Under the pieces are notes generated by a model, which did no database searches, was not told where the DNA came from, and saw nothing but the letters and a program-made list of their open reading frames with translations. Made by a program: the position numbers and the translations under genes. A DNA stretch of 64,000 bases from Podarcis liolepis (Eukaryota), in assembly GCA_965112155.1 (NCBI GenBank), contig OZ218098.1. One strand, given 5' to 3'. Below, piece after piece: positions 986 to 34,400 of the stretch; the stretch's first letter is position 1; each line of letters begins with the position of its first letter.

Positions 986-3900
986 GTACACTGAGTAACA
1001 AAGAACTAGTGTATGTTTTCTTCGGTTGTACTAACAAGCTGACCTTCCAGAAGAGAAAAGAAACTTCTTGTTTGCCAGTGAATTCAGGGGGATTTAAACT
1101 GTGTGCAGGAAATATTTCAAAATGTATATAGTACAACATGTTTGTCCTGTGTCACTTTTGTCTGTTTGCAACGTATGGAAAATGGCTTCCTGGCAGAATA
1201 TTGTCTGTTGGGTTCTTGAATTGCTGAATTGTTTGTTCTGCGAATTTCTTGCTTTTTGTACACATCTTCCTGTTCTTGGTGCTTCTTGGTGTTGTGTTAG
1301 CACTGAGGATTTTTTTTAAAAAGCAAAACATATTCTCAAAACACTATCGTGCTTTTTTTTTTAAAAGTGGCTGAGGTTCCTAAACCCGTCCCTGAAGAGA
1401 AAGTGCCCGTTCCCAAAAAGGTGCCGTCTCCTCCAGCAAAAGGTATAGCCATATATCAAAACCAGAACGCTTTTGACACTTACTTTAAGTCTAGAAATTA
1501 TCATTATGTCTCAGAGCATTGAAACACATAGCTAACAATGCTGTGAAGTCTTACATGTTTGTGTGTGCGGTGGCTTTAAATTAAGTCTATGTTGTCTTTA
1601 AAGTGCCTGAGGTTCCTAAGCCTGTTCCGGAGGAGAAAGTTCCTGTTGCCAAAAAGGTCCCAGCTCCTCCCAAAAAAGGTATATCCAATCTTTAAAACGG
1701 TGTGCAAATTTTATTTTTATTTTTGTCCATAACTGATAACCATTTGTATTAATTCATTAGCTATTAAAGTAGGGTTGCCGTACGTCATACCTGGTGTTCA
1801 CTTTTGGGAATATGGGAAAGTTGTCTGAATAGATAGCTCTTAAACGTTGCAATGTCATATGTGTTTGTCCGCGCTGGCTCGAGACCAAATTCTTAAAACA
1901 ACTCAATATTCTTTAAAGTGCCTGAAGTTCCCAAACCTGTCCCAGAAGAGAAAGTCCCTGTTCCTAAAAAGGTGGCAGCTCCTCCAGAGAAAGGTATATC
2001 CATAAATCTATACCTATAGATACATAAGATGATAACATTTATCATGGCATTAACCAGTCATTTTTGTTGTTGTTGTCCCATTATGTTTGAACTTGAACCA
2101 ACTAAACAATGCCATCCTATACACTTCGACCCAGAAGTAAGTCCCATTGGGATCAATAGGACTTACACCCAGGAAAATGATGGGTATAGGATTGCATCCT
2201 AAATCAGCATAGTGATTTGTGTCATCTTGTATGTCTGTGTGTTGCTTGTGATCTTGTAGTTTGACTGACATTGTGCAATATATATAAAAAAGCTAAAGTA
2301 GTGGTGTCATGTCTTTAAAGTGCCTGAGGTACCCAAGAAAGTTGTCCCTGAAAAGAAGGTACCAACTGCTCCTCCTAAAAAAGTAGAGGCTCCACCTGCC
2401 AAAGGTACAACTCTTCTTATCTGTGTTATAATGTTCTTCTTTCATATTACTAATTATATGTGTGTTTCATCACAGTCAAATATACGTTAGTAACTTCTTG
2501 CATTTGTTTTTATTCATGCTTTATGAATTGTGTGGTTTTCTTATACTTGGTAAACAATTTAAAAATGCCTACCTAAAACAGCACTGTATCTTTTAACATC
2601 TCTGAGGAAAAAATATCTGCTGTTAAATCAAAGAAAATTCTTCCATCTAAGTTTGTTTTTGTGCATCTCTAAATATCTTATAAAGACAATTTATTATTGA
2701 TCTTTTCTAACATCTTCTAGTCTATTACTATAGGCTACTAGCATTACAGGTATCCCATTTTTATTTTTAAAAACCCTTCTTGTAATTATAATAACTTTGG
2801 GTGGTTTTCTTTCTATGTTTGCTTTGTATGCTTATGCACCAGCAAGTCTTTGAAATAATGAAAAATTAATGCTATCTTTAAAGTGCCTGTGGTACGTAAG
2901 AAACCCATCCCTGAAGAACAGGTCACTGTTGAAAAATACTTCTATGAAGAATATGAGAAATATGAGACCTATGAGAAGACTGAGGAGTTTCTTCAGGTAG
3001 AAGAGGGTGAAGAACCTGAAGAATATGAGGAAGCCCCAGAACCTGAAAGATATGAAGAAGCTCCAGAAGAACCTGAAGTCGAGCAATACGAGGAAGCTCC
3101 AGAAGAATTTGAACAGTATGAAGAAGCTCCAGAACCGGAGGAACTTGAGTACTATGAAGAGGTTCGGGAGACCAAGGAGATTGAAGAATATGAGGAAGTG
3201 TATGAGGTTCCACCAGCAATAGGTATATTAATCATTTACCTGTTGTTTGTTGCTGCCCTGAGATTGAACCTTCTTTTGAATGCCCAAATTTCCCCTCCCC
3301 CCAAAAACCCACCCCAGAGTTCCCTGCTTTTGTGCTTACAAGACTCCATTTGAGGGGCAGGTTTCCCAGAGTGGGTCAAACCAACTATGCTGTTGTTACT
3401 GAAGAGTTCAAAAGCTAAAGATGGGTGTATCCTCCTTTAATGATTAGAGACTTCTTCTGTAATTGTGATTACAGTCTTCTGAATTTGGCAATTTGGTTTC
3501 TTTGTAAATAACTAAAAGCTCCTTCGTAAAATGTTTTTCAAGTGCCTGAGGTGCCTAAAAGAGCCATTGCTGAAGAAAAAGTAAAAGTTGCTGTACCTAA
3601 AAAAGAGGAAGCTCCACCAGCTAAAGGTAGATAAAGCTGCTGAATCTGTTCCTTTGTGTACCCTGAAAAATCACGTGCCCTAATGGGTGATTGTTGTCCT
3701 TACATTTCAGTTTTCACTAGCAGATAGGACATTAATTTTAATATGTCACTATGGGTTGTATCCATTGTTAGTCATAGTCATAACAGACCCAATGGAATTA
3801 AAGGTCATGACTAACATAGGCCCATTAATTTCACTGTGTCTGCTCTAAGTTGGATACAAACCTGTTAGTTGAAGTGTCTAAGGGCATGAGCTTGAGCCTC

Positions 3901-6900: not shown

Positions 6901-9900
6901 TGCAATAACCTCTTATTTTAAAATGCCCACATTTCTAAAAAAAGACTAATATCTTTAAAGCACCTGAGATTCGAGAAAAGGCTGTTTCACAAGAAATAAT
7001 TCCTCCTCCATCGGTCTCAAAAGAATTGGAACCTCCGGCAGCTAAAGGTACACCAGCAATTCAGTGAAAGTGATAATGAATTAGCAAATGTCAAGGCATT
7101 TAAATGTGCCATAATAGCTCATTGTCATAAATTTTGGGGTGTTGTGTGCCAACGTCAATAACTGTTTATTTAGTTTGTCTGTTTCTATGTGTTTCACAAT
7201 TTTTTTAATTTCCTGCCACAAACTAATATCTTTAAAGTGCCTGTGATACGAAAGAAAGCCATTTCGGAAGAACAAGTAACAGTTCAAGTATCTAGGAAAG
7301 AAGCTACACGCTATGAAGGTACATAATCCTTTAATTAGAATGTTTCATCTAAAAGTCTTCTAACTTGTCAATGCTTTATGTTACAGAGCCCAAGCCCAGG
7401 TTGTCATGTATACTAAAGGTGTTTATGGCCATTTGATCGGCCATTCACACTCCATTCACATTACTAATTGGATAGGCTTTAAGTAAATTCATTTTCAAAT
7501 GCAGCAATAGACACACATGGGGGATTGTTTCAAGGTTTAGATATTATTTAGGCTGCCTTTCACATGTCTCAGATGTAGCCCAATAAAAACCATTCTCATA
7601 AAGCATTAAGGGAGAAAAATGAAAACTTGAGTGAAAAAGAAAATAGCATAAGATCCAGTTAATGATAGTTCAGTAGCAATGTAAAAAACTTTTTTCAGAA
7701 CTTAACTGAAAAACTTTTTTCAGAACTTAACTGAAGATTGGAATAGCAAGAAACCAGAAAGGTGGAACACTTAGATTTTAATTAGATTAGACCAACTGGT
7801 TTCAGTGGGACCAAACTTTATAACTAGTGAGGCTAACCATAAAAGCATGACTAGTGCTCAGTTGAGGGGTGAGGCTTAACTTGCCTTGGTAGACATGACC
7901 CATGAGGGCAGAAAAATAATCAGAGCCCAGGTGGGGTAAAAAGGAGTTCCAGCAAAAAATGTTTAGGGACTTATGGAGCGCAGAAGGGGCATATTTCAGA
8001 ACCTTTCGCTCCTCCACCCCCTTTGCTCTTAACAACAGGCACTCTACTTTATATGTGATTGTAGCAAACCTAGATTTAAGCAAATAATTGTGCTGTACTC
8101 CTATCTGGTTTCAGCCTGCGCTCTAATTAGCAGAGCAAAAGGTTTGAATTAGTTAACCTTGAAGAGGGCCTGCTTCTGTGACTAAATGAGAAGTATAAGT
8201 TTATTCCACAATAAATACGGCTGGGCTCTCTGTTTGTTGGTCATAGTCTTTGGTTATGTCTTTTTTGTCCTATGCTTTTTACAAGTATGATTTTGCATGT
8301 CTCAAAGAAAACTAATATCTTTAAGATACAGAAACATTTGAGGAAATGCTTCTAGAAGAAATGGAAGAACGGTATCCTGCCGCCATTCCTAGGAAACGTG
8401 AGGTTGCACCTCCCAAAGGTATATTCTCTCTTCGAGGAAAACGTAAAGCTACCAAAGTCACAAAAGTGACATATTTTCATTATTTCGCTCTTGTTCAGTT
8501 TGATGCTACTGTTTGCATTTTGTGGTTTAAAAATTCTTACAAGGGAATTGATTTTATTTAAAGTGTCTGAGGTGCCCAGAAAAGGAGTGGCGGAAGAGAA
8601 GATATCCATTGCAAAGCATGAAAAAAGAGAATTAGTTTCTGTACATGAAAAAGCAGAACTTACTGAAGTATCTCAGATAACGCAGCCTCAAGCACCAGAA
8701 AGGAAGACAGCTGCTCGTAGACCCACAAAACCAGAATCTATTGCTGTATCAAAGCCAGCAGAGCCTGAGCTGCCAAAACAGAAGCCCCTTGTTGCCAAAC
8801 CCAGAAAACCGCAACCCGTTGTAGAGCCTGAAGTGCAAGAAGAGGAGATAGATATTGCTGAACCTGAGGAACCCATACCTGTTGCAGTTTATGAGGTAGT
8901 CGAACCTCGTGTGCCAGAAAAGAAGAAAGTCGTTGCTAAACCTAAAAAACCAGAGCCTGTTGTGATGCTTAAAACAGTAGAGTCAAAACAGGAGATAGCT
9001 GTTGCCAAACCCAGAAAACCAGAACCTCTTGTGGAGCTTGAAACAGAAGAGCCTGGGGTGCCAGAAAAGAAACTATTCATTGCTAAACCTAAAGAAGCAA
9101 AACCTGGTGTGGTTCCTAAAACAACAGAGCCTCCAGTGCAAGAAGACCAGATGGCTGTCTCCAAACCTAGGAAATCAGAACCTGTTGGGTTTCCTCAAAC
9201 AGTAGAGCCTGAAATGGAAGAAGAGGAGACAGATATTGCTGAACGTGAGGAACCAAAACCTGTTGTAGTTCTTGAGACGGTAGAACCTCATGTATCAAAA
9301 AAGAAGGCAGCTGTTGCTAAACCTAAAAAACCAGAACCTATTATGGTGTCTAAAATAGTGGAGCCTCCAGTACCAAAACAGAAGATAGCTGTCACTGAAC
9401 CCAGAAAACCAGGACCTGTTGTGGAGCCTGAAACAGCAGAGCCTGAAGTGCTAGAGGAGCAGATAGTTGTCTCCAAACCCAGAAAACCAGAATCCATTGT
9501 CATGGCTCAGATGGTACAGCCTGAAGTGGAAGAAGAGGAGATAGATATTGTTGAACTCAAGAAACCAAAACCCACTTCAGTTCTTGAGGCAGTTGAACTT
9601 CATGTGCCAGAAAAGAAAGCAGCTGTTGCTAAACCTAAAAAAACAGAGCCGCTGGTGTCTGAGCCTCCTGCACCAAAACAGAAGATAGCTGTCACCAAAC
9701 CCAGAAAACCACAACCTGCTTTGGTGCCTGACATAGAAGGGCCCGAAGAGGAAGAAAAGAAGGCAACCATTGCTAAACCTAAAAAAACAGAGCCTTACAT
9801 GCCAGAAGACAAGACGGCTGTTGCCAAACCCAGAAAACAGGAATTCATTGTCATGCCTCAGATGGCAGAGCCTGAGCTGGAAGAAGAGACAGATATTGTG

Positions 9901-12900
9901 GAACCTGAGAAACCGAAACCTATTGCTGTTCTTGAGTCAGCAGAACCTCGTGTGCCAGAAATGGAGGTAGCCGCTGCTAAACCTAAAAAACCAGAACTTA
10001 TTGCAGTGCCTAAAACAGTAAAGCTTCCAGCGGCAAAACAGAAGATGGCTGTCACCAAAGCCAGAGAACCAGAAGTTGCCATGGTGCTTGAAACAGCAAA
10101 GCCTGAGGTGGAAGGAGAAAAGAGAGCAAAATCCAGGGAGCCAGAACCTACAGTGGTGCCTGAAACAGTTTGGTGGCAAGAGCCAGAGGAAAAGGCAGCT
10201 GTTTCCAAACCCAGAAAACCAGAGCCTGCTGTTGTGCTTGAAGCAGCGGAGGCTCAAATACCAGAAGAGACTGTGATGGTTGCTAAGCCTAAAAAACAAG
10301 ACCCTTATGCTGTGCCTGCAACAGAGCCTCCACCATTAAAAGGTAGACGTCATTCCCAAAGGGAAAAGACACTCTTGGCTATAGAAATGTTTGTCTTGTT
10401 TGTGGGGGAAAAAATCTTCTTTGTTTCATGTTAGTTTATAAATTTTGTGCTGGCAACTTTTCTTGTCATACGTAAATGTGAATGTTCCAAATTAATGTCA
10501 ATGTTTGGTGTCAAGTCTTTACGGTCTTGCTGTTATTTATCTTTATTGTGGCTTCTTCAGTTCGTACAATTAACACAATCTAATATCTTTATTGAAGTAT
10601 CTGGTTTATCCAAGAAACCTGTTCTAGACAAGTGCTGACAAAAAGCAAAAAAACAGAAGCTCTGCTGGGTAAGAAAGAAAGTAAAAAAAGAACTTATCTC
10701 TTCTTGTTTCCTGATAATCTTGTGTCCCAAAAAGTTCCCATGCTGATTTTTGCAGAAATAGGAATATCATTTGCAGCTGTATTCTTACCTTGATGCATAG
10801 GCATCCTTCCCTTTATAAACAAATATGACACAATACATCATAAAACATGAGGTCAGATGCCAGGATGAAAGGGGAAATGCTAATTATGATAACAATTAAT
10901 AGTAATAAACATACCCAAACCACTGTCAGGAAGGTAACAGCAGTGGAAGTAATCTTACAAAACAGATGTATCAGCAGGTGTTTTGAAATCTTTCAAATGT
11001 TCAGTTGAGTTCAACCATTTCCATCAGCCCATAAAAGATAAGTACTTATATATATGAATGAAGGACCTGTATAGAGGGGAATTTTTATCGCAGTGCCTTC
11101 TTTTCAGTCACTTGAATGATTTGTTCAGATTTGCCACCTGGACAGCTAATATTCAGCAACAATTGACGTTGTGGTGCTTGTTCATATGTCAACTATAGAT
11201 GTTTTGAGAAAAGGTCTATGTCTATACAATGTAAAGGGGAGCCTCTTGCTTTCAATTGAATACCCACCCGTGTGATTTTAATGTCAATATTGTCCATGTC
11301 ATTCCATGTCCATGTGTCATGTTCTGTCTGTTGGGACTAAATCTGTTTCACTTCTTCATGCCGTGTTATAAACCATTTTCAGTTCTTCAAAGTAAAATGT
11401 ACTAATATCTTTAAAGTTCCCGAGATGCCCAAGAAGGCTGTGCCAGAAGAGAAAATACCTGTTGCAGTGCCTAAAAAACCAGCGCCTCCACCTGCTAAAG
11501 GTATATACCTCAGTCTTGGTGCCATTCATTCTCACCAAAAGAAAAAAGAAATGGGTTATGGGTTCACTTCCCCCCACCCCCATTTATAATTCTGCATTCT
11601 TTTCTTCTTCCTCGTCTTCTAAAAACCGACTTCATTTCTTAATTGGAAACGTTCAAATAGGTTTTGGTTACAATTCAGAGAGTTATGGATACAAAACCTC
11701 ATCGATTTCAATGGAACTTGCTTGCCCCCTGAACTGTGACTGCTTAATATTGACCACTAACCTTCCTGATATTCCTCTAAAGGCGCCTCTTTATTCCTGA
11801 CACTTTTGCCTACATTTTAACAAACTGAAACGTAACAGAAAATGATGCTATTTCTTTTCAAGTGCCTGAGGTACCCACAAAAGTTGTCCCGGAAAAGAAG
11901 GTGCCAGCTGCTGTTCCAGAAGCACCTCCAGCTAAAGGTAACATCCCCTTTGACAGAAAACAGCAGTGGGTTGGGGCTGGTCCAGGAGGATAGGCATTGG
12001 CCTGGTTTGCATGACATGGTAAGAAGAAACCTCAGCTGCAGCTCATGGTTAGTGAGTAGACCACTTAACAGTGAGTCTGGGCTCCAGCAATATACTAAAC
12101 CAGGCCTCCTCAACCTCGGCCCTCCATATGTTTTGAGACTACAATTCCCATCATCCCTGACCACTGGTCCTGCTAGCTAGGGATCATGGGAGTTGTAGGC
12201 CAAAACATCTGGAGGGCTGAGGTTGAGGAAGCCTGCACTAAACGAAACTTTGATTGAGCTCAGCGCAGTGTATTACTAAAAAAGACTATGGAGGAGCAAA
12301 ATGGTTGCAAGCTGGTTGAAAATGGTTGAAAGCCTGCACTTTTGCACAATTCTGGTAAGCCATAGCTTAGCTTACTGTGTCACATGAACCAGGCCAGTGT
12401 ATATCTTATTATTTTAAATTCATATTACTTTTTTATACTACACATTATCATCTCTAAATGCCATGTGCTCTTCACTTTAGGAGACCATATCAAGTGTGGT
12501 ATTTGGATACCAAAGGTGGCAGAAATGTTCTCCTTTAAGCTAATATTATTTATTTGTTTGTTTGCTTGTTTGTAAATTCACAGTCAGCCGTTACTATCAA
12601 AATTTCTAGAACAGGTCCCATAAAAATAAGAAAACAATTTTAAAAGATCAAACAGCAGATAAGACTAGCATCACTAAGACAGTCTCCTCAACAGTGAACA
12701 GGCAGGTGAAATAAATAGGGTGGCATCAAAAGATCTTATGAGAATATATAATTATGGTTTCCGTCAAATTTCAAATTATAAATTATACATTAAAGGATAT
12801 AAATTGAATACTATTATTTAAATATCCCCATCTACTATAACTTTATTTCATATTATTATATTTCCTTTTTAAATTATTATTGAAACTAATTTATTGTAGT

Positions 12901-15900
12901 GTTGGTTGTTAAATTGCTAACTGCTTAATTATTTACTGTTCTGTTACTGGTTTGTCAATGCTGTGCTTTCTTTCTTCCTTACTATTACTTTCTATTTAAA
13001 TTATGTATAATTTTTTAAAAAAATGTTAATGGTGGTGTTAATAACAATGATGGCAAAAAAGACTGCATGCTAGGTGAGCCTCCCTTGGGAAATAGTTCCA
13101 CAAAAAGGCCACTACCCCAGTCACCACCCACCTTGCCTCAGAGAGATGGCACATTTCAGATGAGAGCCTTCAAAGACAAAGCCTTGTGTGTTAGATGATG
13201 GCCAGTGCAGTCAAATCTCAGAAGCGGCTGCTGCTGCATTCGATGGGATTCAAACGTAACTGGACCTAAGATTACAGAATTAAGCTGGGCAATGTTGTAA
13301 CTTGTTAATATTCAGTGGGACTTACTTCCTAGTGTGCATTGAGTTTAGACTGCAGCCTCAGTTAGCATTTGTGTCTCAGAAGTTATGTGTATCGTCCTGC
13401 AAAAAGAGTAAGCAAAATCCATACCCTTCCTTTAACAGTGCCTGAAGTACCAAAGAAACCTGTTCCAGAAGAGAAAGTTGTGCCTAAAAAGCCAGAGGTG
13501 CCAGCAGCTAAAGGTGTGTGCATTTCATGAATTCAACAAATAAGATACTCCTATCCCATCAGTTCCTTACTGTTCCTTTAGTGTCTACACTTCATTTCTT
13601 TCATACTTCCTTGTCATTATTCTTCACATAGAATACATGGCAGCAACGATAGCACTTCTTAGTCATGTTGTATATATGGTATACAGTAGTACCTTGGTTC
13701 TCAAACTTAATCAATTCCAGGAGTCCATTTGACTCCCAAAACCGTTCAAAAACCAAAACGCAGCTTCCAGTTGGCTGCAGGAGCTTCCTGCATGCAAGCG
13801 GAAGCCGCGTTGGATGTTTGCAGCATTCGGGAGCCGATTTGTTCGACAACTAAGCTATTCGAAAACCAAGGTACCACTGCACGTGTTTAAGTTCACATTA
13901 TTGAAGCTCTTATGTGTCCACCTGCTACCATTCTGTGACAGGATTAACATATGCTACCTTTGGAATAAATGGCATTAACATAAGCTAATCTTATTCAGTG
14001 CCTGAGGTACCAAAGAAACCTGTCCCAGAAGAAAAAGCTCCAGTGGCTGTGCCAAAGAAGCCAGAACCTCCACCTGCCAAAGGTAGGCCTCATTTTTAAA
14101 GAAAGAATGACAAGTTAGTACTACCAGCTGGAACTTGCTGGAACTCAGTTCTGGCACCTCTCAGGTGGGCGCCATTGCCATTCTAAGGAAACAAAGTCCG
14201 GCACCTCTTTTTCTAGAAAAATAGCACTGAGAAGTACACATTTTTCAAACTGAAGTCTGTTGGTGTTAGTATACTGTATATCTGCAATACCTAAATGTGT
14301 TTGGGTGAGCATAAGAAGAGACCAAAAACCCATCTAATCTAGCACATGGCTGTCACAGTGCCCAACTAAATAGATGCTAATGGGAAGTCTACAAGCAGAA
14401 CATGGGCACTACAGCACTCTTCTCACTTGCGATTTCCCAGAAGCTGGTTTTGAGGAGCATACTGCCTCTACTCTGGAAGTAATACACAACCATAATGACT
14501 GGTAGCCACTGGTAGCCTTATTCCCCTATGAACCCCTTTTGAAGGCCAACCAATTTGGTGGTCATCACTGCATTAAGAACAACATGTCAGAATCATGAAC
14601 TCAAATGATGGATCTGTGCTGCAGTTTAATGTTGTGGTTGTGTGTGTGTGTTTGCAACTGTGTATGTTTCTTAAATGACTTGTTGTAAAAAAAATAATAT
14701 TAATGTTTTCAAGTGCCTGAGGTGCCAAAGAAAGTTGTTCCGGAAAAGAAAGTACCAGCTGAAGTGCCTAAGAAACCGGAAGCTCCACCTGCTAAAGGTG
14801 TGTATTACTCGTAACGCATGAAACAGCTTTGTTTGCTCTTGGGAGGAATATTTAACCTTTATCAAGGGGAGAGACAGGAAAATATCGATTTCCGTCTGTG
14901 TGTTTTCTACTGTGTGATCCATAAAGAAAGACAGGAGGCTTACTACTGTACTGCTTAATTGTGTCATACCAGTTCTCTACAGTTTTGTCCTTATTTTTGA
15001 AGTTCTGTGTTCTACGACTTTCATGTGTCCTTAGTATATTCTGCACATTCTTTGATATTCGCATTCTTAATTGAAATTATTTTCCCTTCAAGTTCCGGAA
15101 GTACCCAAGAAAGTGGTCCCTGAGGAAAAAGCAAAGGTTCCTGAGCCTAAAAAACCAGAGCCTCCTGCTGTTAAAGGTACATGTCATAACCAGAAACGCC
15201 ACAAAGAACTTCAGATTTGCTTTGTAGATGTAACATTAGTTTCACATAACTGAATATTTATGAAAGTATGTTTAATAGTCTTATTTTCCCTCTGAGATGA
15301 CTCCTCATAATGCAGTCATATGTAATATGTGTCCCACATGTATTTTAGAAAAAAGATAGCCCTTTATGTTGGTTTCCCTTCCCCTTGTTTGCTCTTGTTA
15401 ATTACTGGCATACATCACTGAAGCCCAAGACTTAAAACAATTTACTATCTTTGAAGTTCCTGAGGTGCCAAAGAAAATCCCAGAAGAAAAAGTACCCGTG
15501 AAAAAGCCTGAACCTCCAGCACCCAAAGGTATATCTTAGCATCTTGGGAATATTTGTATTCTTATTGTTTTGCACGTTTAGTTCTTTCAAATTCGCCACC
15601 TCCTCGGATTTCTTTCTACTGTTTTGGTGGCAAACTCAAATCTGTTCACTCGATTCTGTGAACAGATCTAAGGAGTGCTGCTTGAGTTTCTTGTATAATC
15701 TGTTTTTCCCTTGCGTTTTGCTCATCTCTTCTACATTTAGAAAGCTGGCGCATGTTTTAATCTGTTTATTGTTATTTTAGCCTTCTCAAAAGTCTTAAAT
15801 TACTGTTGTTAATTCTTCTTATCAATAATTGTATTATCTTTCTTTGTAAACCCCTTTGAGGATTTGTTTTTTATTTTACTTTATTTTTACAATCAAGCAG

Positions 15901-18900
15901 TATATAAAATTTCTCGTGAAAGTAAATAAATAAATCGGACATTAAAACTGACCAATGTCTTTTAAAGTGCCAGAAGTTCCCAAGAAAGTCATTCCAGAAA
16001 AGAAACCGCCTGAACCAGAAGCTCCACCAGCTAAAGGTACATGTCAACATTATTGTGGTCACATGGAAGCATCTTCTTATTCTGATGTGTTTGTTGTACT
16101 TTGTGTTCCTTGTTTTCTCTTATGATGTACAAGATGTCTTCTTCATGTGAGATATTCAGAAGGCTTTCAGCCTATTTATAAAATAATTTCTTTATTAGCT
16201 TACTCTTAGCTCCTGGTGAGTGATCTGCCATCCAGGCTGTTAACCTATTTACTTTCAGCAACCCTGGCAGCAGAAATTTACTGGAAAATAAACTGTGTAG
16301 TTCATATACTTAAGGAAAATTCAAATGAGAATGTACCAGGAAGCATCTCCATCCCTTACTAATGCTATGCTCATCTTCCATTGATTATGATAATTTAACA
16401 GAAGGACAAAGAAATAGGATGGCAATTAAACTGCCACACTTTATAGAGATCTGCATAACTTCTCAGGAAAGGGAAGGAGGACTCATTTAACAAAACAAAA
16501 ACAAACTAGGGATATAGCATGAAAATAAAGAAAATATACTGTCTGCATTTGTGGAGAGGAGGAGAAAATTGTATTTGAATATCGTTTTTGTCACTGTTTT
16601 CAAGTTTTGTGTTCATTGTTTTCAAATCTTTTATATCTTTGACAATCACACATTCAAAACTAATATCTTTTAAGTGCCTGAAGTGCCCAAGAAAATTGTC
16701 CCAGAAGAAAAAGTACCAAAGAAACCAGAACCTCCCCCTGCTAAAGGTATTTGTCAATTCTGAAATAATCATAGTGAAAATATTTGGGTACAATGCTGCT
16801 TATATAGAATCAGTGGTAAAACTCCCATGGGTTTTAAATGGAGCAGGATTCCAGCTTTTGCCTTGCTCCCATGCCTTCAGTTCCTTCATTTATTACTTCC
16901 CATTGAAATGTGGCATTTATTAGGCACAATCCGGGTGAAGCTAAGCACTTTTAAGGCTAAAGTTCTATGCACACATCTGAGAGAATGTACACCATGGGAC
17001 TTCCTTCTGACTAAACATGAGCAGGAAGTTTATGCATGTCCCATTAATTTCAGTGGAAGGATTAAGCACAAAGTGCTTAACTTTAACTGGATTATGCCCA
17101 AAGTAACATGTAATCCAAATGCATATCAGATACATTTTTATAGTCTTTTTGATCATATTGAGTAAGAAAAGCCAGAAGTTTATGAGCTGCCAGTGACATT
17201 TAGGTTGCATTGAGCTTGGTGGGTCACAAAGAAGTTGGTGGTACGCCTAGGCAATGAATGTCGATAATAAATCAAAATACAAAATATCAACAGGCCAAAG
17301 AAGACATGTAAACTTCCTGTTGTGTTGTGTCATCTTCCTATAAGGTGGCAAAATTCTTGTCAAAGGCATAAACTTATTTATTATCCATTCAAGTCATTGG
17401 ATGTTAATGTGAACATCCTATTACTATGTACTTGGATTTTACCATCATTTTGAGTATATCATTGGGTTTGGAGAATTAAGGAGAACACCTTAGGAATATA
17501 TGATGGCCCAGAAGAAAATATTTATCAAATATTTATCAGTTCATATATAGTCATCAGTAATAGAGTAAATATAACCAAGGCTAAAACCACTCCAATCTTT
17601 TTACAGATTTACTGTTTATGAGGAGTGGGGGTGTAATGCTATCTTGTCACAGTGGGATTGTAAATGCATTTTCTTTGTTTGTGTTTGATACCCTTGTTTT
17701 CCATCTGCATTGTCTGAATTAGTGATTGTTTTAATGAAAGAGAAAAGCGAGAGGCTGAGATAGATCTTCAATGTTATGTAGTAGATAATGTTGTATATCG
17801 TCATGTTTTGTGTCTCACGGTTTCTTGATCTCATAATCTTGCACATTGCATTTCGAATTAATAATAGTAAAACAAACAAATATCTTTAAAGTGCCAGAGG
17901 TGCCCAAGAAACCTGTGCCTGAAGAGAAGGTCCCTACTCTCAAAAAGAAAGAACCACCAACACCTAAAGGTATATGTTATATCTGATCAAATCTTGAAGC
18001 GAAAAACATCATTTTCTTATACTCTTGATCATTGATCATCTTTTGGATATCCTTATGAGTCTATGTCATGCATTCTTTTCAGTAGCTTTCTGTGGCTAGC
18101 ATCTCCATCCTTATAGTTCTACTGCTGGTACAAGTGGAGTTGTACTTCATGGTAGTTTGTTGTTACAAGATTCTGGGGACAAAAGCATGCATGCCCCCTC
18201 ACCTTACATCTTGAGCTTTGACATTTTCCCATCTTTTACATTTCATTGTGCTTTCAAAATTCAATAGTAAGCATTAACTAATATCTTTAAAGTGCCGGAA
18301 GTGCCCAAGAAGGCTGTCGTCGAAGAGAAAGAACCAACTCCTGTGCTTAAAAAGCCTGTACTTAAGGAACCAGAACCTCCTCCTGTTAAAGGTACATTTC
18401 AGCATTAATGCAGTTATAAAGAATGTGGTTTTGATGCAGGTGTTTAAAGCAGATGTCTGGGAGATTCTTGTTCTGTCTGTGCTCCGTTGCTTAAAATTTC
18501 TTTTGTAAACAATACTGTTGGTTCAGTCCAGTGTGTGAGAGAAAAAGTGCTTAGCTGTGCTGAACTTCATCACGACTGCTTTCTCTGTGTCCTAGTATGC
18601 AAACACAATTGCTGATTTTGTTATAATTGTGCATTATGTTTCAATCTTCTTCTTCATATTAGCTACATATCTCTTGCCCCTTCTTAAAAGTAAAACTAAT
18701 CTCTTTTAAGCACCCAAAGTACTTCGGAAAACTGTGCCAGTTTAAAAAGTAACTCTTGTTTTACCTAAAGAACCAGAACGCTTTGCTGTGTCTGAAGAAC
18801 CAGAGACCATTAGTGTTTATGAAGAAGAAAAAGTCACTGTTGAGTATGAAGAAGAAGTCGTCACTGTTGTTGCCGAAGAACGTCAACCTGCTATTGTGCC

Positions 18901-21900
18901 TAAGAAACCCAAGCCTACCATTGTCCCTAAGAAACCAGAAGCTGCAGCCGTGCCGAAACCACCAAAGGCTGTACTTAAGAAACCAGAACGCCCACCTGCT
19001 AAAGAGACCTTGGAATATGAAGAAGAACGAGAGGTGCAAACGATTGTTGGGTACAGAGAGCGAATACATGTTTCTGTCCACCAGGACATAGAGGCTATAG
19101 TTGCACTTGAAGAACCCGAGAGTGCTTCAGCTTTTGAGATCACAGAGCCTGAGCAATACTTTATTGAGGGATCAGAGGAGATTATTTCACTTGAAGGACC
19201 CGAAGCTGTCCCAGAAGAACCAGAAGCCGTTGCTGCTCCGGAAGAAATGAAACCTGCTATTGTGCCAAAAAAGCCGAAGCCTACTGCTGTAGCTAAAAAG
19301 CCAGAACCTGCAGCTGCACCCAAGAAACCAGAACCTATTGCAGTGCCTAAAAAGCCGAAACTTGCTCCTGTACCTAAAAAACCGGAGCCTCAGAAGCCAG
19401 AACCCTTGTTTAAAAAACCAGAACGCCCACCAGCTACAGAGATCGAAGAGCACGAAGAGGAACGAGAGGTGCAGACTTTTATTGGAAAGAGAGAGCGACA
19501 ACATGTTTCCGTCCACCTAGACATAGAGGCCATAACTCCTTTTGAGGAACCTGAGAGCGCTGCAGCTTATGAGATGGAAGAAGAAGAACAATACGTCATT
19601 GAGGGGTCCGAGGACATCGTTTCCCTTACAGGACCTGAGCCTGTTGCTGTCCCTGAGGAACCCCAAGTCGTTGCTGCTCCTGAGGAACCTAAACCTGCTC
19701 TTGTGCCCAAGAAACCCAAGCCTGTTGCTGCGCCTAAGAAACCTGAACCCGAAGCTGCTCCCAAGAAACTAGAACACGTCGTGGTGACGAAAAAGCCGAA
19801 ACCTGCCGCTGTGCCTAAAAAACCAGAGCTTGCGGCACCGCCCAAGAAGCCCGAACCCTTGTTCAAAAAACCAGAACGCCCACCAGCTAAAGAGATTGAA
19901 GAGCACGAAGAGGAACGAGAGGTGCAGACTTTTATTGGAAAGAGAGAGCGGCAACATGTTTCCGTCCACCAAGACATAGAGGCCATAACTGCTTTTGGGG
20001 AACCTGAGAGCGCTGCAGCTTATGAGTTGGAAGAGGCAGAACAATACGTCATTGAGGGGTCTGAGGACATTCTTGCACTTGAAGCACCTAGAGCTGCTCC
20101 TGAGGAACCAGAAGTCATTGCTGCTCCTGGCGAGCCTACGGAAGTACCTAAGAAACCAGCAAAAGGTATATGGCATAATCTTTTCCCGTACAAAGAGTAT
20201 GTCTTCCTTAAAGCAGAATGTTGACAAGCGTTGCTTTGCCAACTTTCTGCTGAGCAATTCGAAAAACTGCTCTTGGAAACAAAGTTGTTGTGTGTATACA
20301 TTGGTGTGTGGGTGTGTGAAAGAGAGAAAGGTTCTTTCTGATTCTGCAAAGCAATTTGCTTAGGCCTGCAAGAATTTGAAATTTCCATTATTAATTGACA
20401 TGAAAGTAAAAAAAAACTTAAATGTATGAATGGAAACAGATTCAGGAAGAATTATTCATTTGAAGCTGGATGAAGGTGATGTCTGATGTGCCTGTGGGTT
20501 GATGGGTCTATTTTTCCCCTGTCTTTTAACAAACCAACTAATATCTTTAAAGTGCCTGAGGTACCCAAGAAAGCTGTTCCAGAAAAGAAAGTACCAGTTC
20601 CTGTGGCTAAAAAAGTCAAACCGCCACCAGCTAAAGGTATATGTCCACACCTAAAGAAGAAAATTTCTTTGTTCTTCTTAAAATACTCTCTTCTTCTGTA
20701 CTGTCTCTCCTATAGTTTTTGCTTGACTGAAATAACCTAGTGTTCATTTTATAATACGAACTCTGTATGTATAATACAAAGTCTGTATGTCTCTAGATAC
20801 GATGTACGTCTATGTATCTGTCTGTAGCATTAATCTTGCTTTTGATACGTCCTTAATTCTTCGTTCCTCTTCTTAACATCTTGGTACCTCTTACTTCAAT
20901 ATTTCTCAAAGTAAAAATAGAAATATTATCTTTAAAGTGCCTGAAGAGCCCAAGAAAGTTGTTCCCGAAAAGAAAAAACCAGCTGCTGCACTTAAAAAAC
21001 CAGAAGCTCCTCCCGCAAAAGGTACTTTTATCATTCACAGAGAAAATCATTATCTTGCTTGCTGCGTTTGGTTCAGCTGTTGGATTTGTAAATCGTACTA
21101 ATGTGTATAAATGACAGGCTGAGCCTAACTTGGGAGGGGATGGGGGTGAGGGAGTGTTTGTGTCCAAACATAATAGGTAACTTCAGCAGCTCCGCTTTTG
21201 CTTTTAATGCCTTGTTTGTTTTACCTACATGAAAGTAAAACTAATTAACATTTCTTGAAGTCCCTGAAGTCCCTAAGAAACCTGTGCCAGAAGAAGAGGC
21301 CCCTCTTGCTGTTCCTAAAGAGCCGGAACCTCTGCCTGCAGAAGGTAGCTCTCCCTATTAATCACGACGTCATTCTTATCCAGACTGCTATGTCCGCTTT
21401 GTTTGGTCTTACGTTTTATGTGGTCCTGTATGTATATGTAAGGTGGGGTGGTGGTGGTAGAGGACTGTCTGTTCTTTATGATGTCCTTCTGTTTAAAGTC
21501 TGCCATTCTACCTTATTACAGATTTCAGGCCACAGTCTTCAATGACTGCGAGCAATTCTAACCGTGGAAAACCCACGCTTAGAATCTTGATTTGCCATTA
21601 AAGACTGAAGCTAATACTTCAATTATCTCATTTTGCACAAATTGGCTTTGGCCTTTTTGTCATCTTTCTGCTGTGTGGTGTTGCACTCCTTTTGGTTGCA
21701 ATTATAGTACTGGCCTCATTTATAGGGGCCTTAGGGAGAAATCAGAAGCAGGGCTTTTTCTTTCCTTTTTTGTCCAGCAGCAGCAAGTCTACCTGGGNNN
21801 NNNNNNNNNNNNNNNNNNNNNNNNNNNNNNNNNNNNNNNNNNNNNNNNNNNNNNNNNNNNNNNNNNNNNNNNNNNNNNNNNNNNNNNNNNNNNNNNNNNN

Positions 21901-24900
21901 NNNNNNNNNNNNNNNNNNNNNNNNNNNNNNNNNNNNNGCTATTGCCTTTATGTTGAGGGATCTGAATTGTGAACATTTGAATGAAACACAGCTGCATCAA
22001 ATAGTTGCTTCATACAAAGTTGGACCTTATCAGGCAATCAAAGCTGCCCCAACTTCTTTGAAGGGGAAAAACACATGTATATATATATAAAATCTGTGAA
22101 TCTGATGGCAACAATCCTTCTTTAAAATATGTGTGAATATAATCTGGACATACACTTTTCTAAAGCCCCATCAAATGCAGACTATATAGGCCTTTGTGCA
22201 GAGGGCTGCAGAGGGTTCCTAGAGGCCTGATGCAATTTCTGTTTACGAAAGCATCCATTTAAGGGCCTTCCATCCATTTATGTAAAAAAATACACTGTGA
22301 CACTGGTGTGTTTGTCTGTGAGTGTGTATGTTGTAATAATGTCCCCGCTATTTTGTGCAATGTGTCTCCAATTCTTCTTGCCATTTGATCTTTTAAATGG
22401 CAATCTTATCTTCATTGTCGATATTCTTTAAAGAGCCAGAAGTTACAGAGGAAATTGAACCGGAAGAACCAGTACCTGTTCCTATTCCAGAAACAGAGGA
22501 GATAATTCCAGATGAAGGTATATACTAAAGTGTGAATGAAATATACCACTTTCTTTTGTACCATCTCCATCTTGCTGAGTAAGACTTAGGTGCGTTTGTT
22601 CCGTGATGTGTATACTCCAGTATGTTTTGTTTTGTTATTTTTTGTGTGTGTGTTTGTATGCGTGTATTTCCTACGTTGTATTGCTTTCTGTAACTGTGTT
22701 GGTGATTCCCATTATCTTTGACCATGTAAACACCTCTCCCTCTTAATTGACTTGGAAGTTTACTAATGACTTTTTCAAAAACTTTCTTGAACCTATGGGC
22801 CATCAGATATTTTGAGCTGAGTTGTTTATTTTGGCACTTGCATTACTGGGAGTTTTACGAATGGAGTCTATAAAAGTAGTTTATTTCCTTTGTTACATTA
22901 GATGGTTTACATCTGAGGTTTATATAGTATAATTACATTAGCACTGAATCTACCGCAATATCATTTAAAGAACCAGAACCGGAGAAGAAGATACCTGAAA
23001 AACCCAAACCCCGTGTACCTTTCCCACCAAAAGAGGAGGTTAAGGAGGAAAAGGTTCAGCTTAAAGGTATCAGCAGCAACCCCAACAGTATTTAACAACT
23101 TTTACTAAGCCCCAGTTTTATAACTAATGCCTATTGACACATAATAATGTTCTTTGAAAGTGTGGACTTTAGGCTGCCATCCTATTCCCACTCACCTGGG
23201 AGTAAGCCTGATTAAACTTACTTTTGAGTAGGTGTGTATAGGATTGCGCTGTTAATATATTAATGTAAGTCTAACTTAATGTTGTCTGAATGGTTTTCAG
23301 TCTAATGTCCCTACTCACTGATGGTTTTCATTTTTTTTATTGTTTCTAAATTTGTAATTAGGGTTTGCAATCCAGGTAGTTAATTTTACCTGTGCTCTAA
23401 GGCCTTATGCATGGTGTAGAAAACCTCCCATTACATTCAATCAGTCACTGTGCTTTGCAGATAGAGAGCCTCCTTCAGATACCATCTTACCAAGAGCTTT
23501 GTTCCACATAATGTAGGAATCAGGCCTTAAGTGTCTTGGCACCTACCCATTGGAATTCTGTCCTATTAAACATTAGACAAGTGATGTCTCTGTTGCCTTT
23601 TTGGTACCTACTGAAGATCTTCCTCTTTCAACAAGCCTTTTAAATAGAGATCTTTCCCAGTCTGCATCTGTATTGGAATTGTATTGGGTGTTTTTAGATG
23701 AATTAATTGTTTTGTCTTTTGTGTGTTTGCTGCCCTGGGCTCCTTCAGAAGGAAGGAAAGGTTATAAATTTAACAAATGATGACGACGATGTCACCTCAC
23801 AAACTGCTTTTGAAACTCTCCTGAGTTTCAAACACCAGTCAACGTGTGGCATGTTTGTTTGCTGTCTGAGATTCAGAAGTCCAGAGTCCTACTGAGTGTG
23901 TGAAACTTGTTTTATAGTTCTTTGGATTGTATTTAGTTATTTGAAAGTGCATGTGCCAAGCATGGATGTAATATAGCTAGCATTCAGAATTAAGGATAGA
24001 GAAAATGGAACTCAAAGCATTATAGACAGGGAGGAAGATTTATTACTTCCTAATGAAAATCAGTAGTGGATTATCAAAATAAACAACTATATGTAGCCTT
24101 TTTAAAGGTTCCATAAAAAAATTACTCCACATCCCACATTTTGCAATATTCTGGTCTTATACAGCATCATGAAAAGAATCAAACATAATTTAATATTTCA
24201 AAGTGTATCACCTAAGTAATATTTGGTCCTACAAGAATTGCATTTACTTTTGAAAAATCTGTTCTTTTCCCACCATCTCAAATCAGAGGGAAATAGATCC
24301 TCTTCCCAAAACAAGATTCCACCCCACCACTGCACACACTTTTGCAATAATAGTTTCACGCAAAATTCACAGCGAAAAACTTGGTTATAGGGTCTTTATA
24401 GCTCATGTGAAGAAGGAACATTGTGGCTACACAATCTATTAAAGTTTCAACCGAAGTGGATGTCCTCTCTGCTAAGTATATATAGATCCAGTGAAAACAA
24501 ATTCTTGTATGATCAGATATGCTAGAACCAAAGTAAGCAATGTAAAGTCTTCAGGCTGCATGTATCCTAAGAAGGCCCTTCCCCAGCCCAAGCAGCCACT
24601 ATGTGGTAAGTTGTCCACAGACCCTTGTGTCTTGTTCTCATCTTAAAGAGCACTAGACTGTAGTTTTTAGTATATTTCACAAAGTAGTATATTTTTCATT
24701 CCATTTCCATGTGTGACTTCCAGTGGTTGTTTTGTGTTCAACTCGATTCACTTTTTTCCTATTTTCTTTTTACTGAAGCATACTTTCATTTCGGATGGAG
24801 TATTCTGTGGCTTCTTCATCATGGCCTTGTTATCATGACTAACAATATTATACAGTGGCACCTCAGTTTTCGATCTTCTCAGAAGCCAAACATTTCGGTT

Positions 24901-31400: not shown

Positions 31401-34400
31401 TCTTTAGTGAAGAGCTGGTTTGACTAGAACTGGAACTCAGTATTTAATTGCCAGTTAGAAAATGATTCAGTCACAATATCTCACATTGCTGTACTCCCAA
31501 AAGCTTCAGGTGGAAATATATCAACCTGTGCAAAGTTTATAAAATTGCCTCTGTAGAAGTACTAACAACTATACCAATTCAGTTCACAAGACTGAAGATC
31601 TGTGGTCATCCATGACTCACTTTGGGTAATCTTATTTGAGGGTGGGGGGAGGAATATTTAGCAATAACATCAGATTCCAGCAGTTCTGAGCAAAATGAGG
31701 CCATCAANNNNNNNNNNNNNNNNNNNNNNNNNNNNNNNNNNNNNNNNNNNNNNNNNNNNNNNNNNNNNNNNNNNNNNNNNNNNNNNNNNNNNNNNNNNNN
31801 NNNNNNNNNNNNNNNNNNNNNNNNNNNNNNNNNNNNNNNNATATATTCAAAGCAGAAACACCCCAACACTTTTGTTGTATATTTTTAATTAATAACATAT
31901 GTGGCAATGCCCAGACATTTTATTCTGTGTTATCCAGGTTTTCATGGCACTTTGGCTATGTGGTAGCCCTTTAATACAATTAGAAAGAAGAGATGGGCAA
32001 CCTTTCTCTCTCTCTCATAGCGCAAAGGACCCTTGCCATTCATCTCTACATGTATTATGCTAATTCTAATGGTTATTAATTTTTTGTCATTTGTTATACA
32101 GAAGTGATAAAAGACTGGCTAGTGAAGCCTATTAGAGACCAGCATGTGAAACCAAAGGGTACTGCTACCTTTGCTTGTGATGTCGTGAAGGACACACCAA
32201 ATATTAAATGGTACAAAGGTGATGAGGAGATTCCTCTTGAACCCAATGACAAAACAGAAATTGTAAAAGATGGACCTCATCTCTTCCTCAAAATTAAGAA
32301 CTGCATGCCAGAAGATCTCGGAGAATATGCCGTGGAAGTTGAAGGGAAGAGATACCCAGCTAAACTGACCCTGGGTGGTAAGTGTCTTTTGATCTTTATG
32401 CAATACATTTGCCGGGGAGTAAGAAAAAAGATGAAAGCCCGCAAGACTGTTGAAGTACTGTCTTGATTGCATAGATGTTATTAATTTGTTCATTTCTAAA
32501 TGCCAGAACGTGAAGTTGATCTGCTTAAGCCCATTGAAGATGTCACTATTTATGAAAAAGAAACAGCCAACTTTGACTGTGAGATTTCTGAAGACGATGT
32601 CCCCGGTGAATGGAAACTGAAAGGAGAAACACTCAGGCCCTCACCTGTAAGAATCTGTATTTAAGACCTCGTGAATTTGAATGTAGTATAATTATGTTGA
32701 TCAATTGTGGCCCTGCAGAATACCTTAAAGAAGGATTTAGAACCGTTTGGGCTTATAGTTAACGTTAGTGTGGTTTTCAAAGAGGCACATTTTAATTATG
32801 AAGCTTAAAATCTCAAGAGCAGGGTATCTCCACACAACATAAACAACTGATCCTAGCTCACTGTATAGCTCACCGTCAGAATTTTACTTGCGACCCTAAG
32901 AAGACTTTTGTTACCACATATGCAAGGAATTTAAGGGCGATTGTTATTGAGTACTATGGACAGCCCCAAGTTTTGTTTACCTCAGAGGCACTTGTGGAGG
33001 AAGAGGAGTGGGGGGGCACTGCCCCCGGCAGCGTGATCCTGGTGGGGTGCCATTGTGGCTGCTCCCCCCGCCCGTGCTGGGTGCCACACCCCCAGGACAC
33101 GCGCCACACTGCTGCAGGCAGCGTGCCCCACCCCCAGGATGTGTGCCCCGCCCCAGGACGCGTGCCAGCCCTGCCCCCGCCTGCTCTCCGCCCCCCACCT
33201 GGTGCCGGAGCATGAAGCTCCGCCACTGCTCAGAGGAGGATGGAAGACCATGGAAATATCTTGGCCCTGGATCACTTCAATTACATAGAGGACTTCACCA
33301 TCACATTTTGAGGACTTTACGAGCTATTGCTTTAAAATCAACAAAACATGCTTTGATTAGAATTTTCTTTTGTTACCATGAACTTTTTCATCTTTTCCCT
33401 CCAGACTTGTGAGATCAGAGCCGAAGGAGGAAAACGCTTCTTAACCTTACACAAAGTCAAACTAGACCAGGCTGGAGAGGTTCTCTACCAGGCATTGAAT
33501 GCAGTGACTTCAGCTATTTTGACAGTGAAAGGTAAAGTGTTTCACTAAGAATGTGTCTCCAATTAGCCTGTCGTTTCTGCCATTGTAGTATCTGGGGGGA
33601 AATATTCAATATTCTCTTTATTTGCAGAAATCGAGCTGGACTTTGCTGTGCCTTTGAAAGATGTGACTGTACCAGAGAAACGGCAGGCGAGGTTTGAATG
33701 TGTGCTCACCAGGGAAGCCAATGTGATATGGACTAAAGGCACTGACATAATCAAAGTTGGAGATAAATTTGACATAATTGCAGATGGAACAAAACACATT
33801 CTGGTCATCAATGATTCTCAGTTTGATGATGAAGGAGAGTACACTGCTGTAGTCGAAGGGAAGGAAAGCACTGCAAAATTGTTTGTGGAAGGCAAGTTCA
33901 TTACTGTCAAGAATTACACTGTAAAAGTCACAACAGGAATCAGTCACTGCTTATGACCGGATGGCATTAATTGTCTTTCCCTCTATTTCAGGTGTCCGGC
34001 TGAAATTTATCTCCCCACTCAAAGATCAGACAGTGAAGGAAGGAGAAACAGCCCACTTTGATTTTGAGCTTTCTCATGAAGATATGCCAGTAACCTGGTA
34101 CAAAAATGATAAGAAAATCCACAATAGCAGAACGGTTCTCATTTCTGTAGAAGGGAAGAAACACAAATTAGAAATTAGAGAAGTGACACTTGATGACATC
34201 TCCGAAATCAAGGCTGAAGTGAAGGCATTGCACACTAAGGCAAACCTGAAGGTTTTAGGTAATTTATGTTGTCACATTTTGTTACTGGTTGGATCTGTAT
34301 CTATTATATGTATGTATAAAATACATATCTTTATGTATTTTAGTATTTATGTTTTTCATGTACTAATTCACTCTGATTACTAACCTCTTCAAAAAAATAC

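Follow-up and report, generated by a model that had tools for sequence, protein, structure and literature searches.

The titin gene of the lizard Podarcis liolepis raises the question of how a giant exon of the elastic PEVK region can carry an in-frame stop codon close to its start. The exon lies on the + strand of a 64,000-nucleotide (nt) stretch of DNA (contig OZ218098.1 of NCBI GenBank assembly GCA_965112155.1), which was analysed at its full length and is referred to here as the window. In its ancestral form the exon occupies 18711-20165 (1455 nt), and a TAA at 18743-18745 stands in frame as its codon 12 (phase 1). The answer that we tentatively prefer, at slightly less than an even chance, is a young truncating change that is tolerated in a skippable, conserved, and still intact PEVK exon.

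The gene itself can be identified from the order of its domains. Pfam PF02818 (PPAK) matches the exons at 13999 and 20553 (27 and 25.9 bits, respectively; cut-off 21), and matches to I-set (30925 and 34445) and fn3 (48920 and 59865) follow downstream on the same strand, which argues, in agreement with the initial annotation, that the gene is titin and that the window covers the end of the PEVK region and its transition to the distal Ig and A-band parts. Approximately 39 short phase 1-1 exons on the + strand, with AAG acceptors and AAAG/gt donors (the slash marking the splice boundary), encode the characteristic VPEVPKKPVPEEKVPV..PPAK repeat.

At the upstream edge of the giant exon, the intron ends in ...aaaactaatctcttttaag at 18710, and the phase-1 exon start reads (G)CA CCC AAA GTA CTT CGG AAA ACT GTG CCA GTT, that is, APKVLRKTVPV, followed immediately by the TAA; both sequence and translation agree to the base with what had first been described. 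The frame beyond the stop runs open over 18746-20221, past the donor AAAG/gtatatgg at 20165/20166, in agreement with the long open frame originally reported. The stop is exceptional in its surroundings: all 38 other PEVK-type exons of the window are open from acceptor to donor, and the canonical ones read VPEVPKKPVPEEKVPV at the corresponding position, with E or K where the giant exon has its stop. Readthrough of the stop codon was considered and rejected, since UAA is here followed by A, a combination that acts as a strong terminator.

Whether the stop is ancestral or derived was addressed by homology searches, which comprised a word search with the exon, a full HMMER scan covering 1.84 billion representatives, and a further search that used the resulting homologue as query. 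Among approximately 15 billion predicted proteins, a single unnamed homologue was found, P0001 (with the near-identical P0008), represented by 401-amino-acid (aa) open reading frames (ORFs) on 1330-nt Logan contigs, which matches the giant exon with an E-value of 3e-53 and covers two of its repeat units. P0001 comes from another species than the window, and its protein identity to the giant exon is only 37-47%. The full HMMER scan returned no other genuine match (the remaining six were low-complexity noise), the search with P0001 as query retrieved only P0001 itself, whose cluster holds two unnamed Logan ORFs, and the first 155 codons after the stop gave no match when used as query; nor were matches found in the ESM Atlas or in a metagenome scan.

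The alignment with this homologue reaches across the stop. BLASTP places the lysine at 18746 of the window opposite P0001 residue 5 without a gap, and P0001 residues 1-4 (MPVK) then lie opposite the valine, proline, valine, and stop of the window (MPVKKVPVAAPHEPERF against VPV, stop, KVTLVLPKEPERF), with a lysine at the position of the stop; the leading M of P0001 may reflect a GTG start as read by the gene caller, and the window has a GTG at 18734. Together with the E or K of the sibling exons, the lysine of the homologue argues that the stop is derived and arose through one change to TAA, the original codon being either AAA (the K of the homologue) or GAA (the E of the siblings). The initial proposal that the siblings have E or K here is thus upheld, and the codon lost to the stop is one for K or E in a repeat of the PPAK type. 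At its other end, the tail of P0001 (..LPVKGSWHNVF..) resembles the read-through of the window's donor (KGIWHNLF, from ..KKPAKGIWHNLF..), which shows that the homologue contig is unspliced DNA and shares the donor. The first ~20 nt of the following intron (20166-20185, gtatatggcataatct, read as GIWHNLF) are conserved with the homologue contig (GSWHNVF), and this intron start, which includes the donor gtatatgg at 20166-20173, may by its conservation represent a donor-proximal splicing element.

The immediate setting of the TAA, gTTTAAAAAg, is a boundary between a T3 and an A5 homopolymer, and an error of assembly or consensus is the simplest way in which the stop could be unreal: a misplaced boundary would have turned a true GTT AAA AAA (T2A6) into a called GTT TAA AAA (T3A5). 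The stop sits exactly where the T run meets the A run, the KK of the homologue suggests an ancestral T2/A6, and such a shift keeps the length, so that no frameshift would reveal it. Against this, 125 homopolymer runs of at least 4 bases and 64 adjacent run pairs occur in the 6.4 kb of the other 38 PEVK-type exons with zero frame-breaking errors, and 30 kb of sequence show no evident break in an Ig or Fn3 exon. We regard an error as unlikely.

The body of the exon carries the record of its past. The stop-free part, 18771-20165, spans 1395 nt (465 codons) in phase 1-1, and its composition (E 21%, P 16%, A 12%, K 11%, V 10%) is of the PEVK type and E-rich, with P, E, V, and K together making up 57% of the giant exon. 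Tandem Repeats Finder detects 2.6 copies of a 453-nt unit at 18980-20127 (79% matches), in which each unit (~150 aa) consists of PKKPKP/PKKPEP repeats, a KKPERPPAKE motif, and a non-PEVK stretch of ~75 aa (EEREVQTFIGKRERQHVSVHQDIEAI..EPESAAAYE..EQYVIEGSEDI), which is likewise repeated 2.6 times. Pfam gives no family match for the giant exon and no PPAK match for 18773-20164, and its membership in the PEVK region is argued from composition, KKPERPPAK strings, phase, and position. The three units align in frame at the protein level, and every insertion or deletion (indel) between them is in frame; dN/dS between units is 0.23-0.26 (Nei-Gojobori), with dS of 0.41 for the pair B-C and ~1.0 for the other two pairs (A-B and A-C). 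Such ratios at these distances point to long-term coding constraint, indicating that the units are old and diverged under purifying selection and that the exon has long been a real coding exon.

The same data bear on the age of the stop. No second disabling lesion occurs in 1392 nt of the body, where 3.4% of substitutions would make a stop and where, indels included, 140-190 disabling events would be expected per unit of neutral divergence; none was observed. On the assumption that the body has evolved neutrally from the origin of the stop onwards, the age of the stop is at most ~1.6-2.1% divergence (95%) and most likely below 0.5%. The stop thus looks like a recent mutation, and if the exon is dead, its death is recent. 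An old pseudoexon that is never included would account for the stop and for the near absence of database entries (one unnamed ORF apart), but it is very hard to reconcile with a lone lesion in 1455 nt, with in-frame indels and dN/dS of 0.23-0.26 between units, with an intact acceptor and donor flanked by short introns (319 nt at 18392-18710, and 387 nt downstream), and with small RNA-like sequencing runs that hold part of the exon. An old dead exon would be expected to show several lesions and relaxed constraint; the single lesion and the constraint exclude it as a candidate, and we consider it the least probable of the explanations weighed here.

What becomes of the stop in a transcript depends on where splicing enters the exon, and two acceptors come into question, 60 nt apart and with the stop between them. 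The ancestral acceptor, actaatctcttttaag at 18695-18710, leads into 18711, is of the type usual at this locus, and is undamaged, including its ctaat motif. A candidate second acceptor lies at 18749-18770 (gtaactcttgttttacctaaag), where gtaactcttgttttaccta leads up to the AG at 18769-18770; it comprises a branch-like gtaAc (A at 18752, 18 nt from the AG), a pyrimidine tract ctcttgttttacct, and an AAAG end at 18770. Splicing at 18771 would yield (G)AA CCA GAA CGC in the same phase 1 as 18711, and the initial annotation was correct in stating that this restores a stop-free exon of 1395 nt. Both 1455 and 1395 are multiples of 3, and the neighbouring exons are also phase 1-1, so that skipping of the giant exon would preserve the frame. 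In the homologue, bases 18749-18770 have their counterpart within continuous coding sequence: they are the codons VTLVLPK of the ancestral exon, and P0001 is colinear and open across the 60 nt between the acceptors, gap-free from three residues before the stop, with a similarity there equal to that of the rest of the exon. As had been supposed, this segment (18711-18770; a degenerate PPAK-type repeat reading APKVLRKTVPV, stop, KVTLVLPK) is, as judged from the alignment, ancestral coding sequence.

To compare the two sites, a position weight matrix (PWM) was trained on 31 real acceptors of PEVK exons in the window and applied with leave-one-out scoring; the matrix is inflated for sites of the 18711 type by the paralogous ctaatatctttaaag motif, and shorter matrices gave the same order. 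Real acceptors (n=31) have a median score of 16.1 (range 3.0-26.3). The site at 18711 scores 13.4, at the 35th percentile of these and within the top 0.2% of 1914 decoy AGs, in line with its initial description as the locus-typical acceptor. By contrast, 18771 scores 2.5, below 31 of 31 real acceptors; it falls within the top 2.6% of the decoys and, when set against 254 in-phase AGs internal to PEVK coding sequence, within the top 2%. Another in-phase AG (18796-18797, ctttgctgtgtctgaag/AACCAGAG), with an exon start at 18798, scores 2.0-2.9, about equal to 18771. On generic grounds the two principal sites look similar: both have A at -3, and pyrimidines make up 86% of positions -5 to -18 at 18771, matching the best real sites, versus 64% at 18711. 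The acceptor-like character claimed for 18749-18770 holds for its good pyrimidine tract, and the acceptor look of the stretch is only moderately unusual. The 135 nt that follow the stop contain 12 in-phase AGs, and the chance that one of them scores as well as 18771 is ~20%. Taken together, 18771 appears usable in principle, a plausible but weak site that is not clearly selected and that faces a strong, undamaged competitor 60 nt upstream.

Splice-like strings of this kind are common here: K-V and P-K-E codons (AAA GTA, CCT AAA GAA) yield donor-like and acceptor-like sequences throughout the PEVK coding sequence. One result is a 51-nt in-frame interval, 18720-18770, that begins CCCAAAG/gtactt and ends cctaaag/AA and whose removal would delete the stop, giving APK-EPERF; as a real GT..AG intron it was rejected, being too short for vertebrates and probably a by-product of these codons. 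A 22-nt intron at 18749-18770 was set aside for the same reasons.

The reading that we favour can now be stated as a mechanism. A single recent nucleotide change, AAA or GAA to TAA, would have struck codon 12 of a 1455-nt titin PEVK exon. Because 18711 is undamaged, transcripts of this allele that take up the exon in the ancestral manner would carry a premature stop far upstream of hundreds of exon junctions and should be cleared by nonsense-mediated decay (NMD). Tolerance would come from the symmetry of the exon (phase 1-1, with the locus-typical AAG acceptor and AAAG/gt donor), which could be skipped without breaking the frame, like other I-band titin exons, and the allele might be heterozygous or rare. 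The AG at 18770 may provide some rescue, which this account does not need. The manner of tolerance, the decay, and the frequency and zygosity of the allele are the parts that we infer.

Two sets of observations weigh against this account. Of all nonsense changes that the ancestral exon could undergo, just 2.8% fall upstream of 18771, and a stop within that bypassable fraction is what a rescue predicts, being otherwise a modest coincidence. Moreover, six small sequencing runs that were guessed to be RNA (9-104 million letters, from four organisms and four studies) hold 15-27% of the words sampled from 18200-20300, a share that shotgun DNA of such size could not reach. As judged from these word shares, relatives probably include the exon in abundant RNA, and a homozygous stop without rescue would therefore be costly.

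Both points would suit a shift of the acceptor, in which exon-including transcripts are spliced mainly at the AG at 18770 (or 18797), the stop has become intronic, the 465-aa insert lacks the first 20 ancestral residues, and 18711-spliced RNAs are a decaying by-product. In addition to the position of the stop and the apparent expression in relatives, this explanation has in its favour that 18771 is in phase and ranks high among internal AGs, that its pyrimidine-rich tract contains a T4 run, that a UnAy-type branch candidate lies 18 nt from its AG, that the body is intact and was formerly under selection, and that two real exons of the window begin alike, one at 22971 (aag/AACCAGAAC) and another at 22434 (aag/AGCCAGAAG). 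However, the undamaged 18711 with its ctaat motif would normally win over a site scoring below every real local acceptor, an equal in-phase AG exists at 18798 and composition by itself would supply such a site in about one case in five, and the continued colinearity of the 60 nt with the homologue, at the similarity of the rest of the exon, means that any intronisation must be recent. The initial suggestion that the 60 nt have been intronised is accordingly not borne out, since a completed shift predicts neither so low a score at 18771 nor an undamaged 18711. We consider the shift possible but doubtful.

A further alternative is a regulated choice between 18711 (stop, NMD) and 18771 (productive) that tunes the amount of titin carrying the insert. 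Alternative splicing coupled to NMD (AS-NMD) is an established mode of regulation, and the geometry allows it: the acceptors share a phase, lie 60 nt apart, and leave many junctions more than 50 nt downstream of the stop, resembling AS-NMD poison segments in having two same-phase acceptors of which the proximal one includes a premature stop. In its strongest form, this would be a species-specific switch gating a 465-aa super-repeat spring insert, with the stop fixed and the 18711/18771 ratio differing between muscles or stages. Known regulatory poison segments are usually conserved, whereas the lizard stop is not, the single homologue having a lysine codon in its place; no conserved element marks the segment, and skipping of the symmetric exon would achieve the same regulation without wasting a ~100-kb transcript. 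Proposed from the outset as a switch between truncated/NMD titin and a productive form, this arrangement finds no support here, and in either form we hold it to be improbable.

Returning to the young truncating change that we prefer, the closest known parallels come from human genetics. Human TTN truncating variants in the general population are mostly found in low-inclusion exons, including those of the PEVK region, whose symmetric exons are skippable, and such variants are carried by healthy people and count as tolerated or recessive (PMC11999099). The likeness lies in a nonsense change within an exon whose length is a multiple of 3 and whose skipping keeps the frame; unlike the human PEVK exons of ~84 nt, the lizard exon measures 1.4 kb and consists of super-repeats without an identifiable human counterpart. 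Nonsense variants can also be removed from mature mRNA via alternative splicing (PMC5131816). Here, too, the stop could be avoided, by in-frame skipping or by a downstream acceptor, but the lizard alternative acceptor is weaker, in the local model, than every real acceptor of the locus. With the PPAK and E-rich exons of titin the giant exon shares its PEVK-rich composition, phase 1-1, AAAG/gt donors, KKPERPPAK-type motifs, and a position in the PPAK array upstream of the distal Ig domains, while differing in that it has no Pfam match and carries the ~75-aa non-PEVK motif. In its present state, the stop is best described as an ordinary-looking single nonsense change.

The neighbouring exons, all on the + strand, are of the canonical kind. 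Upstream lies a 99-nt phase 1-1 PEVK exon at 18293-18391 (acceptor ctaatatctttaaag/TGCC, donor TTAAAG/gtacat), and downstream an 84-nt PPAK exon at 20553-20636 (Pfam PPAK, E 1.2e-5); an ordinary PEVK exon of 72 nt starts at 16675. Many PEVK exons (e.g., those at 11417, 18293, 20553, 6448, 6961, and 7238) share a near-identical tail of the intron in front of them, (a)aagtaaaa..ctaatatctttaaag, whose branch-like ctaAt is unusually close to the AG, at a distance of only 11-12 nt; duplication of exons together with their introns may have left this tail behind, the motif may be functional, or both may hold. Another giant PEVK exon, at 8564-10342 (1779 nt), is open, with a typical acceptor and donor, higher-order repeats, and no Pfam match, and giant exons are therefore not unique to 18711-20165 in the window. 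An E-rich exon of 339 nt at 2884-3222 (..YEEAPEPERYEEAPEEPEVEQYEEAPEEFEQYEEAPEPEE..) has the usual PEVK acceptor and is of the poly-E type with its own short internal repeats. Runs of N occur inside titin introns at 21798-21937 (140 bases) and 31708-31840 (133 bases). A search of the literature on reptile PEVK exons found nothing specific.

If the stop is real, the locus represents a natural experiment on the tolerance of a giant elastic protein for a truncating change in its spring region, and it would be a reptile counterpart of those human TTN variants for which clinical interpretation turns on exon inclusion. Should the downstream acceptor be the route, the locus would show a nonsense mutation being answered, or anticipated, by the movement of an exon boundary. 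Of possibly more lasting interest for the evolution of titin is the exon itself, 1.4 kb in length, built of super-repeats, under selection, and with one unnamed homologue.

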